A DNA stretch of 63,952 nt, counting the filler, from Basidiobolus meristosporus CBS 931.73 (lineage: Eukaryota; Fungi; Basidiobolomycota), in NCBI GenBank assembly GCA_002104905.1. It is 3 parts of 3 records of this genome, joined end to end, with 100 filler letters (N's around TTAATTAATTAA, not from the genome) between each part and the next. Parts side by side here need not be neighbours in the genome. Positions count along the whole stretch, not along the records: positions 1 to 17,003 come from MCFE01001106.1; 2 more parts are not named here. The stretch is one strand, 5' to 3'. This document shows positions 1 through 15,255 of this stretch, one piece after another. How positions within the stretch are numbered: position 1 is the stretch's first letter; each line of letters opens with the position of its first letter. A program made the translations under genes and the position numbers. Under the pieces are notes generated by a model. The model worked only from the letters and a program-made list of their open reading frames with translations, was not told the DNA's origin and ran no database searches.

Positions 1-56
1 GCCTCCGAAGAGACTGCGACCTGAACGCAGCGCTTAGACCACTCGGCCACCTCACC
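1..56 (-). tRNA. tRNA-Leu(CAG), 3' part cut off by the window edge
   Basis: Reverse complement reads GGTGAGGTGGCCGAGTGGTCTAAGCGCTGCGTTCAGGTCGCAGTCTCTTCGGAGGC: A-box TGGCCGAGTGG, anticodon stem CTGCG/CGCAG with loop TTCAGGT, long variable arm TCTC-TTCG-GAGG. One G is missing from the usual AAGGC of the D-stem. Confidence 0.85.
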
Positions 57-68
57 AGCTTGTACTTT

Positions 69-294
69 TGTTATGAAAGTCTGAATCCCAACCAGAACAG
101 GCAGCAAGTTGTTGCATATAGAGATGCGTCAACACCAAAAATCATCAAAGATGATCAAAGACTGATGGGCTAAAGTAAGACAAGTTGTATGTAAATGATC
201 AAGAAATGTATAAAAAGTAGATCCTAAGCTAAAATAAAGGTCAGACCTTGTTACACCAAACAGAAGGATGGGAACTGGCCTGGATTTCATAACA
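69..294 (+). repeat. 5' LTR of the Gypsy element
   Basis: TG...CA ends, 10-bp terminal inverted repeat, about 95% identical to 4490-4715 and 5153-5378. Confidence 0.95.
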
Positions 295-3200
295 TTTGGT
301 AGCAGCAAAACAACAAATAATCCTCCAAACTACAAGAAAATGAGTACTAGCAAGAGTACTATAGGAAGCAGCCCTGGTGAAGACATTAATGCATTGCTGC
401 AAGAGCAATTACAAGAATTGAAAGAAGAGAACCAGTGGCTAAAAGCACAGTATAGTGCACAGGAAGAGTTGCCTACTAAAGAAGATATTCTGAAGGCATA
501 TGGAAGTTTGGAATCCGGTCATGCAAAGTTAGCAAAGCCTGATACATTTGACAGGAAGTCATATGTGGATTCTTGGATTTTTCAGGTTGAAAAATACCTA
601 AAATTCACAAATGTTAGTAAGATGCAAATGGTTGATTATGCATCAAGTCTGGTCAGGGGACAGGTGCTATTGTGGTGGAGGTCTCACATGAAGAGGGTCC
701 ATGAAGGACTTGAAGTTGAAATTGAAAAGTGGAACCAGTTTAAGCAAGAATTGAAGGCAGAATTCAAGCTTGTGACAGCAACTAAACATGCTAGAGATAA
801 ACTGGCATAGCTAGTCCAGCAGGGAACAGTTAGCAGCTATACCAATGAATTCAAAAGTATCCTATTAGAAATTGATGGAATATTGGAAGATGAAATACTG
901 GATTAATATGTACATGGACTCCAAAAGTCCACTAGGAAAGAAGTGGAGCTTTGAGATCCAAGCTCATTCAAAGAGGACCACAGGATTGCAGAAAGATATG
1001 ACCAGATTATGTTTGATAATGTACACAGCACAAAAAAAGAAGCACATGAAGCTGACAAGAAGTCTACACCCAAGAAAAAAGATAAGGAGTATTGCATCAA
1101 ACATAACTTGTGCTTTAAATGCAATAAGAAAGGTCATAGATTTTTTGAGTGCCCCAACCGGAAGAAAAGTAAAGCTTCTGAACAGGATAATGAGGACACT
1201 GAAGAAACCTTGAATGAAATACAGGACCAACATATTATACACATGGTGGATCAATTTAACAAGCAAAAAGAGGAGCAGACATGACCAATTGTTCAATGGG
1301 TAGCCCAAGTAAACAACTGCCCTGTGAAGATTATCCTAGACAGTGGTGCAAGTGATAACTTCATATCCAAAAAGTTGGCAGTGCAGCTGAAGCTTATAAT
1401 GCAACCAACTAGAAAAAAGTATGTAAAGTTGGTGGCACAAAGCCCCATACAAATTGGGAGTGAAACAAACTTTCAATGGAGCATTCCAACATACAGCAAT
1501 GAAGTGGTTGCAAAGATAATTACCAATGCAAACTTTGATGTAATTTTAGGACAACCATGGCTGTACAAACAAAATCCTGTCATCAATTGGCAAATGCAAG
1601 AAGTGGCAGTATATGAGGAAGGGAGGTGGCAGGTAATCTGTAAACCAAACACAGAACTGCTAAAAGAAGAGGAGGTACTTGTAATTACAAAGTCACAACT
1701 TTCTAAAGCAGCAAGGAAAGTAGACAAAAGCAATGTTGGAATTATATACAGCATTCTAGATGAAGACACCAAACAAACCAACAACACACAGGATATCCAA
1801 AATATCTTGGATGAGTACCAAGATGTGTTCAAAGTACTCAAAGGCTTACCACCAAAAAGAAGCGTGGATCACAAGATTGATCTAGAAAACAGCTCACCAG
1901 TGTCAAAACAGCCTTACCGGATGAGTCCATTGGAGCTACAAGAATTAAAAAAACAATTAGCTGAATTGTTAGAGAAAGGTTATATAAGACCAAGTAAATC
2001 ACCATTTGGAGCACTGGTATTGTTTGTTAAGAAGAAGGATGGGTCACTTTGTTTGTGTGTGGACTATTGAGCCCTAAATTCAGCAACAATCAAAAACAAG
2101 TACCCACTCCCCCAAATTGACAAACTGTTTGACAACCTGAATGGTGCAAGGGTGTTTTCAAAGATAGATCTAAAAAGCGGCTACTACCAAATCTGAATTC
2201 AAGAAGCTGATATTGAGAAAACAGCATTCTGCACACGCTACAGTCATTACAAGTTTGTGGTAATGAGTTTTGGACTCACCAACGCACCGGCCACCTTTAT
2301 GATATTGATGAATGGCATTTTTCATCAATATCTAGATCAATTTATATTAGTATACCTAGATGATATATCAATATATAGCAAAACACTAGCAGAACATCAA
2401 GACCATCTGCAAATTGTCTTTGATATTTTACAAAGAGAAAAATTAGTAGCAAACAAGGAAAAATGTCAGTTCAATACAAAAGAAATTGAATATTTAGGAC
2501 ATGTGATTACCACAGAAAGCCTGAAAGTTGACAATAAGAAAGTAAAGATAATAGAAGAGTGGCCATACCCAAACTCAATAACCAAGCTACAATTGTTTCT
2601 AGGGTTAGCGTCATATTACCAAATGTTTATAGCAGGCTTTGCACAAATAGCAATGCCACTGACAGACTTACTAAAGCAAGAAAGGATGTGCACTTGGTCA
2701 AAAAAATGTGAAGTTGCATTCCAACAGTTGAAGGTTGCATTAGTAAACGCTCCAGTGTTGAAAAGCCTGGATTATTCAAAAACCTTATATTTAACAACCA
2801 ATGCTTCACTATGGGCCATAGGGGGAGTACTGTCACAATATCAGGACAAACAGGAGCATCCAATTGCGTTTGAAAGTAGAAAACTCTCAGCAGCAGAACA
2901 TAATTATCCAACACACAAAAAAGAGTTATTAGCAATAATTGTCTGTTTGAAAGTGTGGTGATGCTACCTAGAAGGAAAAAAGTGTATTATCCGGACAGAT
3001 CATGCAAGTCTAAGATTTGTTAATACACAAAAAACCTTATCAAGAAGAATGCTGTGTTGGACAGAATACTTGCAACAATTCAATTTTGAGATCACCTACA
3101 TAAAAGGTAGCTCAAATAAAGTAGCCAATGCACTCTCCAGAATGGAAGAGGAGACACAAGAACAGATAATAGAAAACACAATCCTCATGATAGATGCATT

Positions 3201-4489
3201 GGATTGGCCAACTCTAATACCTCAATACCTACAGGAGCAAACCTTCCCAGAAGAGATCCCTGCAGAAGTTAAAGAATTAGTAAGACAGGAAGCAGACAAG
3301 TTTTGCATAAGTGAAGAAGTTTTGTACAGAAAAATACAAGACCTAGAAATCCCGTTTTGCCCACATATATTGCGCGCAGATCTAATCTGCAAATATCATC
3401 AAGCATATGGCCATTTAGGAGTGCAAGGAGTCTTAAACTTACTGAAGCCTCAAGCCTGGTGGCCAAATATGACTCAAGATATTGCAAAAGTTATTTGGTT
3501 CTCCCCCAACTGTCAGTTAGCCATGCTGGGAAGAAAACAAGAGGCACAACTTCACCCATTACCACAAGTCCCAGCATGTAGTTGGTGGAGTTTAGACTTC
3601 ATTGGAAGGTTGCCAGAAACAAAAAGGGTAACAAATGGATACTAACTGCTATAGACCACACCACAAAGTGGCCAATTGCTAAAGCAATAAGAAGAGCTAC
3701 AGCAAAAGAGGTAGCTACGTTCCTATATGAAGAAATACTGTTACAGTTTGGTTGCCCAGAAGAAATACTTACCAACCAAGGGCAAAACTTTATTGAAGGT
3801 GTAATGGGAAGCTATGTTAGGATGCAAGGAATTAAACACTTAAAAACATTGGCATTTGACCCTAGAACTAATGGGGTGAATGAACGTTTTAATGGGTTGT
3901 TTTGTAGAATGCTAACAACCTATGTCCAAGGTGCATGCCACAAATGGGATGAATTCATGTAACAGGCACTTTTTGCGTGTTGAATACAATGCCATGTAGC
4001 TACAGGGTATTCACCCTTCTACTTAGTATATGGACAAGAGCCAAAAATCCCAGGTGACACAGTACGGCCAAACCTCTGGAATCTCAACAATGAAGACAAT
4101 AAAGCAGAATGGAGAATATGAGAATTGGAGGCGTTAGGCCACAAACAAGAGGAAGTGATAAAAAGACTTGAAAGTCAAGGTCAACAAATGAAATTGCAAT
4201 ACAATAAAAATGTAGTTGACCAAGAGCTGGAAGTTGGAACAAAGGTTCTAATACAAAAGGAGGACCACAAGAAGTTTCAACCGTACTGGATGGGCCCATT
4301 TGTTGTAAGTAGAATAATGCCATTCTCAATATATCAGCTTGTAGATATGAGTGGCCAAGTTCAGAAAACGTTAGTCCACCAAGACAGACTAAAAATAGCA
4401 TTGCAGGGCGGACCATTCCCCAAAAAGAAGGTTTGGTACCATAAAGATAAGGATTCTTCAGGAGAAGAATCAATTGAAGAAGGGGAAAA

Positions 4490-4715
4490 TGTTATGAAAG
4501 TCTGAGTCCCAACCAGAACAGGCAGCAAGTTGTCGCATATAGAGATGCATCAACACCAAAAATCATCAAAGATGATCAAAGACTGATGGGCTAAAGTAAG
4601 ACAAGTTGTATGCAAATGATTGAGAAATGTATAAAAAGTAGATCCTACGCTAAAATAAAGTACAGACCTTGCTACACCAAACAGAAGGACAGGAACTGGC
4701 CTGGATTTCATAACA
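4490..4715 (+). repeat. 3' LTR of the Gypsy element
   Basis: Direct repeat of 69-294, preceded by a polypurine tract. Confidence 0.95.
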
Positions 4716-4719
4716 CTTT

Positions 4720-5141
4720 TGTTACAGAGTAAAGAGTCACTCAATGTTAAGTGGCATCAATGCATACAAAGATGACTTAGTAGCCAGGGAAAAGCAAATC
4801 AAAGACAAATCACCAGACTCACAATAAGGTATAAATACCAAACAAGCAACTAAATAAAAGAAGAGTTTTTGGTTATAGGCAGATTTGATGGGGTAGTGTA
4901 AGAATATCTCTTTAAAAGGTTAGGGTGGTGACTTTGTAGAAATATATTCAAGCTAATATTTGTTCCTACTACGCTCTTCTGCCTATAACCAAAAACTCTT
5001 CTTTTATTTAGTTGCTTGTTTGGTATTTATACCTTATTGTGAGTCTGGTGATTTGTCTTTGATTTGCTTTTCCCTGGCTACTAAGTTGTCTTTGTATGCG
5101 TTGATGTCACTTAACATCAAGTGACTCTTTACTCTGTAACA
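4720..5141. mobile_element. 422-bp foldback/MITE-like element with 164-bp inverted arms
   Basis: 4720-4883 is the reverse complement of 4978-5141 (6 mismatches counted) around a 94-bp spacer; termini TGTTACAGAG...CTCTGTAACA; CTTT on both sides (4716-4719, 5142-5145). Confidence 0.8.
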
Positions 5142-5152
5142 CTTTGTTATGA

Positions 5153-5378
5153 TGTTATGAAAGTCTGAATCCCAACCAGAACAAGCAGCAAGTTGTCACA
5201 TATAGAGATGCGTCAACACCAAAAATCATCAAAGATGATCAAAGACTGATGGGCTAAAGTAAGACAAGTTGTATGCAAATGATCGAGAAATGTATAAAAA
5301 GTAGATCCTATGCTAAAATAAAGGACAGACCTTGTTACACCAAACAGAAGGACAGGAACTGGCCTGGATTTCATAACA
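5153..5378 (+). repeat. Solo LTR of the same Gypsy family
   Basis: Third 226-bp LTR copy with no PBS or internal sequence after it; preceded by an extra TGTTATGA. Confidence 0.9.
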
Positions 5379-8300
5379 ACTTGGACACTGCGAAAAAGTT
5401 TCCAATCAAATATTCTTGAAGTACTGCCCTCACTCGAAGCAAGCATCTTAAAGTATCTTTACCTATTGTTTTTGTTGTTCTCCATTAGTGTCTTTCCATA
5501 ATGAAGAAATGGCAATCGAATTTACGATCAATAAATACAAAATGCCGGATTTGGCAGACTAAATTCAACTGAAAATCAATGGATGTCTCAAAGACGAAGA
5601 ACACAGATCTTTTCCTAAGTAATGGTCAATAAATCAGTTGTAACCGGAGCAATTGTCTAGATGATACTGAGTAGTGAGTAATGGTCGTTCAAGACACTGT
5701 AGTCATCAATGCACAAATGTAAGAGATATGGCTTAGTAATGAATTCAACCCAAGAAAAGTGCTACTTTATACCGGATGAACTAGACTGTTTAAATCATTC
5801 CTGTGTTCTTCCCAAACGTGATTAATATTAAAGTTGTATATTGTGTGACCTACAAACCAAGAGGGTATAATAATGAATATAAAGGCCGAAGAGGAGTGTC
5901 TATTCAAGAAACACCTAATAACAAAATGCTTTTCAGAAATATCCTCTTAGCCGGTGCTTTAGTGCTCTTGGTGCAACTAATGGGGTTGACGTATTCTTTG
6001 ATGCCCTAGATCGCTTTTAGAAGACAGAAAAAGCTGGGAGAACTCAAACCTAGTCTGTGGAGTTACTAAGCAAAAAGGCGGCAAGGATATTTGCAGTTGT
6101 AACAAAGATTACTGCGGGAGAAGAGTAAGTTGACATGGAATTCCCCGTGCGGGAACAGTAACTTACAAGGAATTTAGTGGCATGGTGGAATAGGGATTAT
6201 CTCGTTTAGTACTGGACATGCCGCACAGAGTGGTGTTACATCAACAACATTCAAAGGTAGCATATAAGTATCATTCGGTAAGCTTGCACTCTTACTAACG
6301 CTTAAGTTATTTTTCAGTGGCTCCGAATATCAGACATGTACCAAGGACTCGGACTGTTGCGCCAAGAACTTCTAAGCATCACTATTCCCAACGTCGGCTT
6401 TCTCTTTTTTCGGTGTTTACTGCTAGCTTTGTAATATAAAGGACTGGCTAAGGAAGCATAGCGCTTGGTTGATATTAAATGCTAATTACTATTTCGTATA
6501 TGCACTGTCTCACTTACGAGAATCACTAGCTAGGCATAAGGTTTGGGATCATTTTTTAAGAAGTAGCACACGGCGAGGCACCCAGGTTAATTTGATCTAG
6601 CTTGCATAAAGCTAATTGAGTGGGATTGAGAAGGTGATATAAATCGGGAAAGTTCGCATGAGACCCCACCAGCCAGTCGTTCAGCTTCCTTCCTCTTGCT
6701 AGTTTCCGCCACCGCTTCACTGCAAGCAATTTCCGCTACCCCGCTCGGTGACTCCCAGGTAGCCTTCGCTAGTGAGCCATGTGTCGAACGACAAGGTGCT
6801 TGTTATCGGGACACTTCGGCCCCTAGTCAAGAATACCAGCCGTCAACTGAGGAGGGGGACGATTCAGAAATGAGTGAGCCAATGCAAAAAAGCGAGACTT
6901 CGGGTGAGCAGCCAGGATTCTCTGGGTTGCAGGGGTTCGATATTTTCAATCTTCAACCATCCCAAGCCTTGCTGGACAAAATCAATGGCCATTCCTCCAG
7001 TAAAGCCAATGCCTTGTCCAACTCCAACCAGTTGACCAAGCGCAAGTCATTGATCAAACCCTCTACAAATTATCATCACTCAGCCAGCAGCGCGTGCACT
7101 CAGAGGGGGGTACAAGAAGTATAAGAGATCTGCTCGGCGCCACTTCAAAGATACTAGGATTAGCACTAGTATGCTCCATGAAATAAAGACAAAATATAAG
7201 GTTTGGTCATGGTGAGTTCCACAAAATAATGGAAGAAAATTGAAAAAATATGAAACTATGGATATGTGTGAGAGGAATGCAGAATACTGATGGAGCCCAA
7301 ACAATCGTTAGGAGTGTGCCCGCAGGAACGTAACAGCATAGAGATAGTGTGAGTAATGACCTGATAAGTCAACGAAAGGTGAGATATGAAATATATTATA
7401 GCAATTTGTCCAGCCAAGCCTGTATACCAGCCCACAAATACGTTATTCACTCCACATGCGCTTTATTACCGTAGCAGTGATTCTAGGCCTTGCCACGAAT
7501 CAAGATGCCGTTGCTGCCCCAATCGTCTGCTCTTCTCCATGCATTCGCGAGTATAGAAGGGTTCATTATCGCAGTTAAACATGTGTACAGTATGCGAACG
7601 ATTACTACCAAAAGGTTCAAGTTTTCCCTGTCTTAACCCTAAGCCTGGACATTGCTAATGCCAGCAGCAATAAAGGCTTCAATGTCAAGTATCAAGCAGG
7701 ACCCAGTCTCGAACTGGAGGGTGGGGCCAACGCATTAGAATATGCCAAGCAAAATGGAGCGGAACACTTTGACGATAGTTCTTCCTCTTCCTATGTTCTG
7801 ATGCAGCCCACCCAAGATGTACAATACACAACCTCTGTAGCAGAGACAGAACAAAACATTCAATACACTCATTGTGCTGACAGATAAATCAACCAAAACT
7901 GAGAATATTGAGTAGGCAAAGCAAATCAACACTCTTTGTACAATCTCATGGACTATCAATCCACAGTAGACACAGTATACTAGTCTAAAAAGAATTGGCA
8001 TCAGACGATACCTCACAATCACAGACACCGAAGGAATAGGGACACTGGACATTCGGTTGGTAATAAGGATGGACTAGTGAATGGCTACATGGCCAGATAG
8101 CTTTCATCAGCGTTGTGTATCAACTACTGCATTTGGAGAACTGTTGGGCTACCACTTCGGGATATCAGTAAGCCCTTGTGAGCGCCATGTTCAATGTTTA
8201 TGTACTTACTGCATCGAACTGTAAATAGTTGTATCGATATTGGGAGTTAAATGGCCGCAAATGTGATTTTGGTTTAAGTCAACATAGAACTGTGTTATTT

Positions 8301-11529: not shown

Positions 11530-12041
11530 AAATTCATCCCATCCACTGTAACTAATTCTCCTCATAGCAATAAATCCAATCCCACATTTTATGCCCTGAA
11601 CGCATTTACCATTTAATCCTCGGCGGTGTCGAGGGTATTCTTTACAACGCATTTATTCACAATTTATTTAAAAGCACCTATGTACATGATGGTTCCGCGT
11701 AGGAACATGTCGATGATGCACTAGGCCGTATATAAATTGGAGATTGACTATTGTCAAGTCATGGGTTGGGTGCGGTTTGCTCTAAGATAGATCTTCGTAT
11801 CTTCTAATGGGGTGAAGCGCAATAACTCGTGACATATTACATTTATATTCCAACTTACAAACTGAACAAATCGACAATGGATGGGCGTGTGTTAATTCTG
11901 CCAGGGCTTGGCAAGGAACCCGACATAAGTTAATGATTTTAATTCCATAAATACATTGCTGTCGAATGGGTGGAGATGTGCTCGAGTTTACTTCCTTTAC
12001 TTGTTACAATAGATGAGTACAGTGAATGAATCATAAAACAC

Positions 12042-12638: not shown

Positions 12639-13064
12639 TTAGAAGATTGATTTGATGGTGATCGTGTGACCAACTTTCTCTAGCTCCTCTTTCGCACGAT
12701 CAACAGTGCTTTGTTTAACCAACAAATAGTCGGTGTCGTAGGTGCTGATTGCGAAGATCGATATCTTGGCCTGAGCCAGAGTGGTGCTTAAGTTAGACAG
12801 GATACCGATCAGCGAAAAATCCAGAGGTCCTTGAACCTTCATGCACCTCCAGTCATTCTCATACGCAACCATCCCGTCCTTTTCGAGTAGCTCTTGCATC
12901 ACCTCGCTGCTAGGCTGGAGAGTGACAATGGAAAGCTCCTCTGGGGTGCGCGTGATGGAGTAGAAGGGAAGGTCATCAATCAGCTTGGGGACCTTCGCGC
13001 CAGAGGCGAACTTGAGAACACTGAATTGTTCTGTGTAAAGGAGTAAATCAAGTTGGTGAGACAT
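12639..13064 (-). CDS. Small ACT-domain protein (CASTOR/ACT_7-like, COG3603 type), intronless
   Basis: 141 aa; FYSITRTPEELSIV, WRCMKVQGPLDFSLIGILSNLSTTLAQAKISIFAISTYDTDYLLVK. Confidence 0.85.
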   Translation of the reverse strand: MSHQLDLLLYTEQFSVLKFASGAKVPKLIDDLPFYSITRTPEELSIVTLQPSSEVMQELLEKDGMVAYENDWRCMKVQGPLDFSLIGILSNLSTTLAQAKISIFAISTYDTDYLLVKQSTVDRAKEELEKVGHTITIKSIF

Positions 13065-13257
13065 GGTTGGAAATCACCGGCACCGGTCGCTCCAAGATCT
13101 TTTATATCCAGTCATGATTGCGGAAACCATCCCGGGTGAGAAGAAACAAAAAATATACAGACATTTATTAAATAGGATTGGATATAGAAGCCGGATAAGT
13201 ATATGCAAAAGGAAGATGCCGTACACTGACACACAGGTGCTTGTTTCTATGAAGGGG

Positions 13258-14883
13258 CTAGTCGAAAATGATCTTGGTGGGCTTGACGTTGGGGTCAATC
13301 TCCTTGAAGAAGGCGCCATAGGACTTGTGTTCCTTCTTCTTCACAGTGGTTCCGAACTTGAACAGACTGTCAGGAACAGGCTGGTTGGCCGATTTCAGCA
13401 CGTTGATGAGGGAGCCAGAGTGGGCCTTGTCGTGGGGAGTAAACAAGGTGTGCGCAGTCCCCTTCTTGCCTGCTCTGCCAGTACGGCCAATACGATGAAC
13501 GTACTCATCGATGGTGAGAGGGAAAGTGACATTGATGACGTATTCTACGTTAGGGATATCCAACCCACGGGCTGCGACATCGGTGGCAATCAAAAGTGGA
13601 TAGGAGCCATCCTTGAAAGCACTGATTGCCTCGGTACGTTGGCTCTGGTTTTTGTCCCCGTGGATACCAGTCACCTTCCAACCCTGTCTCATCAAGTAGT
13701 TTTCAACTCGTTCCGCTTCCTTCTTGTACAAAACAAACACGAGCACACGGTTCTTGCGACTCTTGTGGTATTTCTGCAACAGCTCATGAAGTCTACGCTC
13801 CTTTTGGCGAGGATCATCGATCACCTCTACGATTTGGGTTACGTTGTGGCTCACAGCGAGATCGTCCGAACCGATAGTGACCTTGACTGGTTTTACGAGG
13901 AAGTCGTTGGCCAACTTGCGAATGGTTTCGGGCCAAGTAGCACTGAACATCACAGTTTGGCGATGAGGGTTGGTCTTGGAGATGATGGAGCGGATGGCTT
14001 GCTCAAATCCAAAATCAAGCATTCTGTCAGCCTCATCAAGCACCAGGAAGGACACGTTGCTCAAGTCACAAGCTCCCTCTTCAACCAAATCCAAAAGTCT
14101 ACCTGGGGTGGCGACAACAAACTGGGCGCCGGATTTAAGGGCTCTCTTCTGCTGATCCTTGGGCACACCACCGTAAATGCAAACACTGGAAATGTTGCAA
14201 GCGGCACCGACCTCCTCCGCAGTTTCTTGACTTTGCATGACAAGCTCACGGGTGGGGGCGAGAACAAGTACAGTGGGTCTGCAAGACTGCTTGGTTCCAA
14301 AACCAGGCTGTCCCTTGATATGGGTGACAGCTGGAAGAGTGAAAGCAAGGGTTTTTCCTGAGCCTGTTTCGGCAATACCGATCACATCACGTCCAGAGAG
14401 GACAATGGGCCAACAGCTGGACTGGATAGGAGTGGGTGTGGTGAACTTTTTACAGAAGTTCATGATATCCTCGGAGTATCCGGTTTGGTAGAAGTGTTGA
14501 AGAGGTCTGTACTCCTGATCAGTAGTCATGGTGATACCATGCTTCTCGTAGTAAGCTTGGATGTCGCTCTGTGGCAAAGCTTCAACTTCAGGATGTGGCT
14601 GATAGAAGCATTTTCTGATACCGCCCTCCAAAGGAGCCTCAGCAACAACAACAGGCTCAGCTTCAGGCTCGGCCTTCTTCGATTTCTTGGCCTTCTTCTT
14701 ATCAGTGGCTTCCTCTCTATCTCTTTTTTTGTCTTTTTTCTCTTTCTTCTCCTTCTTGTCCTTCTTTTCTTTCTTCACCTTTTCGCCGGATTTCTCGGAC
14801 TTCTTTTCTTTCTTAGCCTTCTTCAACTCCTTGTCAACAGCATTGACTTGAGCCTTGCTGGATTCTTCGGTGATGGCGGGCAT
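13258..14883 (-). CDS. DBP3: DEAD-box rRNA-processing helicase Dbp3
   Basis: Lys-rich N-terminus, PTPIQ, AETGSGKT, DEAD, SAT, HRIGRTGRAG, C-terminal GTTVKKKEHKSYGAFFK...KIIFD; start taken at MPAITEE (14883). Confidence 0.93.
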   Translation of the reverse strand: MPAITEESSKAQVNAVDKELKKAKKEKKSEKSGEKVKKEKKDKKEKKEKKDKKRDREEATDKKKAKKSKKAEPEAEPVVVAEAPLEGGIRKCFYQPHPEVEALPQSDIQAYYEKHGITMTTDQEYRPLQHFYQTGYSEDIMNFCKKFTTPTPIQSSCWPIVLSGRDVIGIAETGSGKTLAFTLPAVTHIKGQPGFGTKQSCRPTVLVLAPTRELVMQSQETAEEVGAACNISSVCIYGGVPKDQQKRALKSGAQFVVATPGRLLDLVEEGACDLSNVSFLVLDEADRMLDFGFEQAIRSIISKTNPHRQTVMFSATWPETIRKLANDFLVKPVKVTIGSDDLAVSHNVTQIVEVIDDPRQKERRLHELLQKYHKSRKNRVLVFVLYKKEAERVENYLMRQGWKVTGIHGDKNQSQRTEAISAFKDGSYPLLIATDVAARGLDIPNVEYVINVTFPLTIDEYVHRIGRTGRAGKKGTAHTLFTPHDKAHSGSLINVLKSANQPVPDSLFKFGTTVKKKEHKSYGAFFKEIDPNVKPTKIIFD

Positions 14884-15255
14884 GTTGCTGATATACACGT
14901 CCGTTAGAAAGAAATGTATGGGACAAGAACAGTGGAGAAAGGGCGCCAGTGTAGAGTCACTTCATTATGTATTTCGATTTTTTTTCACAACATCTGAAGA
15001 AAAAAATTCCTTTCCTATCGAGATTCCTTATTTGGCCTGGTTCCAAGTCCCATAAAGTAGTCACAATTCTATAGGCCACCAGCGCGCCCCATGAAGCCCA
15101 ATGAGATGACGATCCCGGTTAAATTAGATTTATTTAAGTAAGCTAACACTAAGTAAGAAGGCTATGGTCTAGGAAGTGAACGGATTTCTACTAAAATACG
15201 GTCGTGTCCACGGAAGATAGGAAGGGGTGGTCACAGGCGATGCGTTTTGCGCTTT

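Follow-up and report, generated by a model that had tools for sequence, protein, structure and literature searches.

A Gypsy element in a stack of insertions beside a tRNA-Leu-like gene of Basidiobolus meristosporus, a plausible case of tRNA-gene targeting

The subject of this study is a stack of insertions beside a transfer RNA (tRNA) gene in the fungus Basidiobolus meristosporus CBS 931.73. The window, i.e., the whole stretch of DNA, has a length of 63,952 nucleotides, filler included, and the locus lies at its beginning on scaffold MCFE01001106.1, where a tRNA-Leu-like gene is followed by a full-length Ty3/Gypsy element, a foldback element and a solo long terminal repeat (LTR) of the Gypsy family (Table 1). 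In an earlier note on this DNA, the 5′ end of a tRNA-Leu had been placed at 56 and the start of an LTR at 69, and both coordinates hold. The Rfam alignment of the tRNA runs from 56 to 1 on the minus strand.

Table 1. Features of the insertion stack (positions count along the window).
Feature	Position	Strand	Basis and remarks
tRNA-Leu(CAG)-like gene, 5′ part	1..56	minus	Rfam tRNA model match; mature 5′ end = 56; 3′ part lost at scaffold end
Spacer, 12 bp, tRNA 5′ end to LTR	57..68		Read directly; holds ACTT 64-67 and CTTT 65-68
5′ LTR, 226 bp, ends TGTTATGA...TCATAACA	69..294	+	LTR comparison
Internal region, single gag-pol frame: gag, protease, reverse transcriptase, ribonuclease H, integrase	295..4489	+	Pfam and three-frame translation
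3′ LTR, 226 bp, ends TGTTATGA...TCATAACA	4490..4715	+	LTR comparison
CTTT: right duplication of full element and left duplication of foldback	4716..4719		Read directly
Foldback, 422 bp: 164-nt inverted arms, 94-nt centre	4720..5141		Termini TGTTAC...GTAACA
CTTT (5142-5145, right duplication of foldback), then GTTATGA (5146-5152)	5142..5152		Read directly
Solo LTR, same family, 226 bp, ends TGTTATGA...TCATAACA	5153..5378	+	LTR comparison

The 17,003-bp scaffold ends inside the tRNA-Leu-like gene, and the position of the B box is beyond the scaffold end. Read from 56 to 1, the stretch aligned with positions 1-52 of the Rfam tRNA model, cut at the 3′ side, with 13.4 bits, a weak score because just 56 nt of the gene exist. 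ARAGORN reported no tRNA on the scaffold, which for positions 1-56 is due to the same truncation. The acceptor strand, the D arm and the anticodon arm are all in register, as is the beginning of a long variable arm. The anticodon loop reads UUCAGGU and thus gives the anticodon CAG, and an A-box-like TGGCCGAGTGG is present.

The full-length element is a Ty3/Gypsy element of 4,647 bp with 226-bp LTRs and the 4-bp duplication CTTT on both sides. Its primer-binding site, TGGTAGCAGC, begins at 297, 2 nt past the 5′ LTR, and the polypurine tract is a purine run at 4476-4489 directly before the 3′ LTR. The Pfam families Retrotrans_gag, RVP_2, RVT_1, RT_RNaseH_2, Integrase_H2C2 and rve were matched, and the matches along 1324-3962 follow the order protease, reverse transcriptase (RT), ribonuclease H (RNase H) and integrase, which is the Gypsy order. 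Direct TG...CA LTRs with a target duplication, this domain order, a primer-binding site and a polypurine tract, i.e., the characteristics of the Metaviridae, are thus found together. In the three-frame translation, the coding path is interrupted by 10 in-frame stops and, near 3600-3625, by one frameshift, and the copy is dead for that reason, so that the description of a full Gypsy element in the earlier note applies to its length and not to its coding capacity. As had also been claimed there, no chromodomain is found at the integrase end: Pfam Chromo, by which chromoviruses are recognised, gave no match in the element, and the integrase tail comprises 68 residues past W.GP as opposed to 124-129 in chromoviral outgroups that score Chromo. 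The pairwise identities of the three LTR copies are 94.7% (5′ against 3′), 96.0% and 96.5%. Nearly all differences between these copies (69-5378) are transitions, as are 6/6 differences between the foldback arms, a bias consistent with decay by deamination of DNA that is methylated or targeted as a repeat.

Beyond the 3′ LTR, the stack continues with the foldback, whose arms are 96% complementary (DNA fold z = -35) and whose termini equal the first five bases of the LTR (TGTTA/TAACA). The 4-bp duplication and the target are likewise common to both elements. Further similarity between foldback and LTR was not detected, with local alignment scores no better than those of shuffles, which rules out the arms as a diverged LTR copy, and no match to the foldback was found elsewhere in the scaffold or among 80 related loci. 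Insertion of the foldback by the same integrase would be the economical reading, which leaves the copying of such a hairpin unexplained. The order of CTTT, Gypsy element, CTTT, foldback, CTTT and solo LTR given in the earlier note stands, with two corrections, namely that 7 nt (GTTATGA) separate the third CTTT from the solo LTR and that the right flank of the latter is ACTT (5379-5382) and not CTTT. Together with the preceding T, the 7 nt repeat the first 8 bp of the LTR, and TGTTATGA occurs twice in tandem at 5146-5160, a duplication for which the scheme of sequential insertions described below gives no account.

CTTT occurs three times, at 65-68, 4716-4719 and 5142-5145, and ACTT brackets the entire stack at 64-67 and 5379-5382. 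Because of these three copies of CTTT and the ACTT around the whole stack, three integrations at one site, within 1 bp of one another and between -8 and -12 relative to the tRNA 5′ end, are well supported, and the proposal that repeated insertion at the same site had built the stack is borne out by the duplication pattern. According to the proposed scheme, the empty site next to the tRNA would have read ...TGTACTTGGACAC... before the insertions. The element that is now the solo LTR would have been inserted first, with duplication of ACTT (-8 to -11 on the same scale), followed by the foldback with its LTR-like termini one base over (CTT and the first T of the LTR region), with duplication of CTTT at -9 to -12. 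The full-length element would then have entered the left copy of CTTT as the third insertion. Every newcomer would thus have entered on the tRNA side, displacing the older insertions outward.

Counted from the mature 5′ end of the tRNA, the CTTT duplication occupies -9 to -12 and is thus located within a few bp upstream of the tRNA gene, a position that appears to match the expected start of transcription by RNA polymerase III (Pol III). We infer that the integrase may be tethered to the Pol III initiation complex at the tRNA start, i.e., to TFIIIB placed by TFIIIC, in the manner of Ty3. Pol III-directed targeting at this site is the explanation that we favour, with a confidence somewhat above even.

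A number of observations weigh against it. The claim for B. meristosporus comes from a single locus, at which the tRNA gene is truncated by the scaffold end and carries one C-A mismatch in the D stem. A fixed distance from the tRNA and adjoining the end of the previous element, moreover, predict an identical stack, and since both predict the same second and third insertions, only the first insertion discriminates between them. The later insertions each abut the terminal TGTTA of the preceding one, as would be expected if the integrase preferred the outer edge of a resident element (end- or self-targeting) or a local DNA feature, with the tRNA being coincidental. This alternative, the main rival although an unlikely one, leaves the first insertion unexplained: by chance, an insertion 8-11 bp from a tRNA 5′ end is expected at about 1e-4 per flank, a rough estimate for a genome of tens of Mb with an assumed number of about 200 tRNA genes. 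In addition, both later insertions are found on the tRNA-proximal side.

The related loci speak to the same question. In total, 80 related metagenome loci were gathered with the clade alignment and searched for tRNAs, all of them with ARAGORN and 40 with Rfam. Further points against Pol III-directed targeting are that a tRNA was present at just one of the 80 (L050), that neither flank of L001, which among the relatives with two flanks and a clean duplication is the nearest, holds a tRNA or other Rfam RNA, and that the same is true of L069 (duplication ATTT). These two relatives were thus inserted away from tRNA genes, as preference for element ends or a local DNA feature would allow. L001 is the closest kin of the Basidiobolus element at the level of DNA features, with a 95-bp LTR (TGTTAG...CTAACA), TT followed by TGGTAGCAGCG, and the duplication ATAG. 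Most contigs of the relatives stop inside LTRs and are hence uninformative.

Locus L050 provides a second tRNA-adjacent case, which weighs against end-targeting. Here, an intact tRNA-Gln(TTG) with 64.2 bits is located at 5026-5097, 3′ of the element and in the same orientation. The 3′ LTR begins with TGTTATGG directly after the polypurine tract and most likely ends in ...CACAACA at 5014, about 11 nt from the tRNA-Gln (L050:4727-5097). The value of this case is reduced in that the LTR end is inferred, with the 5′ LTR off the contig. L050 is a distant relative from a different subclade, with an intact open reading frame (ORF) of 1,250 aa and 34% identity to the Basidiobolus element. At locus L002 (4674-4980), the 3′ LTR is followed by 4-5 bp, CCAT(T), and a second copy of the same LTR, which represents another stack or tandem. 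The visible side of L002 is free of tRNAs, a finding in line with end-targeting, but the contig does not include its left flank, the expected place of a tRNA. On the sequences at hand, tRNA targeting appears not to be a property of the whole clade and to occur in at least one other member. The suggestion of the earlier note that a tRNA-targeting lineage exists in this fungus is therefore upheld in part: the position of the stack, L050 and a report on Rhizopus (Ma et al., 2009; PMC2699053) agree with it, while the restriction to one locus and the tRNA-free flanks of L001 do not.

The three LTRs might also derive from recombination within a tandem array (LTR-internal-LTR-internal-LTR) with a deletion and an unrelated insertion of the foldback. 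Tandem arrays with shared LTRs do occur in the relatives L014 and L025, where paired near-identical elements form direct repeats of 3.5-4.7 kb with 98% identity, and the three LTRs of the Basidiobolus stack are roughly equidistant in their divergence. However, no internal sequence is left between the second and third LTR, and the CTTT/ACTT pattern is the exact trace of successive integrations with a 4-bp stagger, which makes recombination an improbable origin. Still less probable is that the 56-nt stretch is a pseudogene, the head of a tRNA-derived short interspersed element (SINE) or an assembly chimera, so that a Pol III complex would not be needed; the low Rfam score, the mismatch and the scaffold end are compatible with this, but acceptor, D and anticodon arms, A box and variable-arm start are in the register of a class II tRNA, assemblies often break in multi-copy tRNA genes, and a tRNA-derived SINE would likewise be transcribed by Pol III.

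In order to place the element, its RT-RNase H piece was searched against 1.84 billion representatives, among which no match exceeded 53% identity. By RT, the nearest proteins are chromoviruses with SH3_Tf2-1 and Chromo domains, whereas by integrase two proteins, P0114 and P0119, are prominent. A region search with P0114 yielded 206 relatives, 120 of which were listed; the named sources among these are Rhizopus arrhizus, R. delemar, R. microsporus, Mucor, Parasitella, Absidia, Lichtheimia, Circinella, Calcarisporiella thermophila and an aphelid. The chromodomain family PF00385 was found in 0/120 of the listed relatives. In a FastTree phylogeny of 63 polyproteins, the element, which was read through with X at each break, nests in a clade of early-diverging fungi whose members have no chromodomain, and its nearest neighbour is the Calcarisporiella protein P0191 with 50% identity over 960 columns. 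The tree was computed on a fast alignment and left out Ty3, Tj1, DGLT-A and Skipper, and its deep branches are provisional. Judged by this tree, the element belongs to a Gypsy clade without chromodomains whose hosts (Calcarisporiella, Rhizopus, Mucor, Absidia) are early-diverging fungi.

Several DNA features recur in the relatives, namely the primer site TGGTAGC, 4-bp duplications, e.g., in L001 (ATAG) and L069 (ATTT), and TGTT(A/G) termini; the primer site of the element is also present in L001, L064, L026 and L069. In the C-terminal alignment, the basal subgroup L064 retains the chromodomain-like Y.VE.IL...YFVKWLGYP...TWEP, whereas the other members of the clade, including the Basidiobolus element, show only W(Y).P at the TWEP position and end shortly after. 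This W(Y)xP looks like a remnant of the chromodomain that would have been kept under selection. Scans of viral contigs with P0114, the RT-RNase H piece and alignment A2 gave no matches.

The element is not close kin of Ty3, from which its clade is far removed, and it would, if it does target Pol III genes, most likely have reached this targeting independently. A more far-reaching version of this idea is that the chromodomain-less clade acquired its targeting of Pol III start sites separately from Ty3, by means of the short tail with its W-x-x-P remnant, and that the same integrase also mobilises the 422-bp hairpin with its mimicked ends (TGTTA...TAACA) to the same site as a non-autonomous foldback parasite. 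All of this taken together is rather doubtful, and it is put forward as a speculation.

Targeting of tRNA genes, a textbook example of convergent "safe-haven" integration, has been elucidated in yeasts and Dictyostelium. Zygomycete-grade fungi have so far offered only hints of it, on the scale of chromosome maps. If the favoured explanation is true, the Basidiobolus stack, which is precise to the base pair, extends tRNA targeting to another deep fungal branch and to a clade without the chromodomain that Ty3 uses as a ruler, and it allows a natural comparison of the ways in which integrases locate TFIIIB. The Basidiobolus case can plausibly be counted as a new instance of a known strategy, seen at one locus.

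Three further features of the scaffold are mentioned for completeness. A second copy of the scaffold region, either paralogous or allelic, is indicated because its DEAD-box helicase clusters at at least 90% with ORX89863.1 from a 78,916-bp contig of B. meristosporus CBS 931.73, and an ACT-domain protein is identical on the scaffold and this contig. At 11638-11837 on the plus strand, a match over the full model length to the Rfam family Afu_182, a small RNA of A. fumigatus, reached 64.6 bits, just below the gathering score of 65, which suggests that this RNA family may be far wider than Aspergillus. A 432-aa ORF without a family match at 13063-14361 on the plus strand is antisense to the gene of the DEAD-box helicase (minus strand, 13258-14898) and most likely spurious.

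Among the known systems, Ty3 of Saccharomyces cerevisiae shares with the Basidiobolus element the Gypsy order of protease, RT, RNase H and integrase and the insertion upstream of a tRNA gene within a few bp of the Pol III start, which for the Basidiobolus element is the expected one. Ty3 is known to use a single tRNA site repeatedly, and the primer site of the Basidiobolus element fits the initiator tRNA-Met, like that of Ty3. The target duplication of Ty3 comprises 5 bp, whereas the Basidiobolus element has a 4-bp duplication and, unlike Ty3, a single gag-pol frame. The two elements also differ in sequence, as the match of the RT-RNase H piece to Ty3 has 141 bits, compared with scores above 250 bits for more than 150 cluster representatives, and the integrase core piece gave no match to Ty3 at E<=0.01. 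Ty3 is the best match in the PDB only because it is the sole Gypsy polyprotein there. The ruler of Ty3 consists of two domains, a C-terminal SH3 domain that acts on TBP and a vestigial chromodomain that contacts Brf1 (PMC8632968). In contrast, the integrase tail of the Basidiobolus element is too short to hold a vestigial, Brf1-contacting chromodomain, and its proposed contact with Pol III factors would for this reason have to differ from that of Ty3.

Other fungal Gypsy elements upstream of tRNA starts are Tj1 of Schizosaccharomyces japonicus, Tyl3, Ylt1 and Tyl6 of Yarrowia and beta and Tca8 of Candida, which are inserted 1-30 bp upstream of tRNA starts and are likened here by description only; every fungal Gypsy element so far described as tRNA-targeting comes from an ascomycete yeast (PMC5911963). 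A literature search for tRNA-targeting elements of Basidiobolus, Aspergillus or Pezizomycotina returned nothing relevant. DGLT-A of Dictyostelium, which is inserted upstream of tRNA coding sequences at a distance of 13-33 bp (PMC5911963; PMC5006619), resembles the Basidiobolus element, again by description only, in its single gag-pol ORF and in having no canonical chromodomain, but resides in an amoebozoan host. The closest named protein is VTP21DRAFT_10268 (P0191) of Calcarisporiella thermophila, which has the same short integrase tail and is intact, as opposed to the broken Basidiobolus copy. For Rhizopus oryzae, Ty3/gypsy-like LTR elements were reported that "often co-localize with tRNA genes" (Ma et al., 2009; PMC2699053). 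This co-localisation was described at the scale of chromosome maps, without distances in base pairs (PMC2699053), and the Rhizopus oryzae/delemar elements have about 45-50% protein identity to the Basidiobolus element and belong to a host of another phylum. In the polyprotein tree, however, the R. delemar RA 99-880 polyprotein RO3G_09175 falls into the same chromodomain-less clade as the Basidiobolus element.

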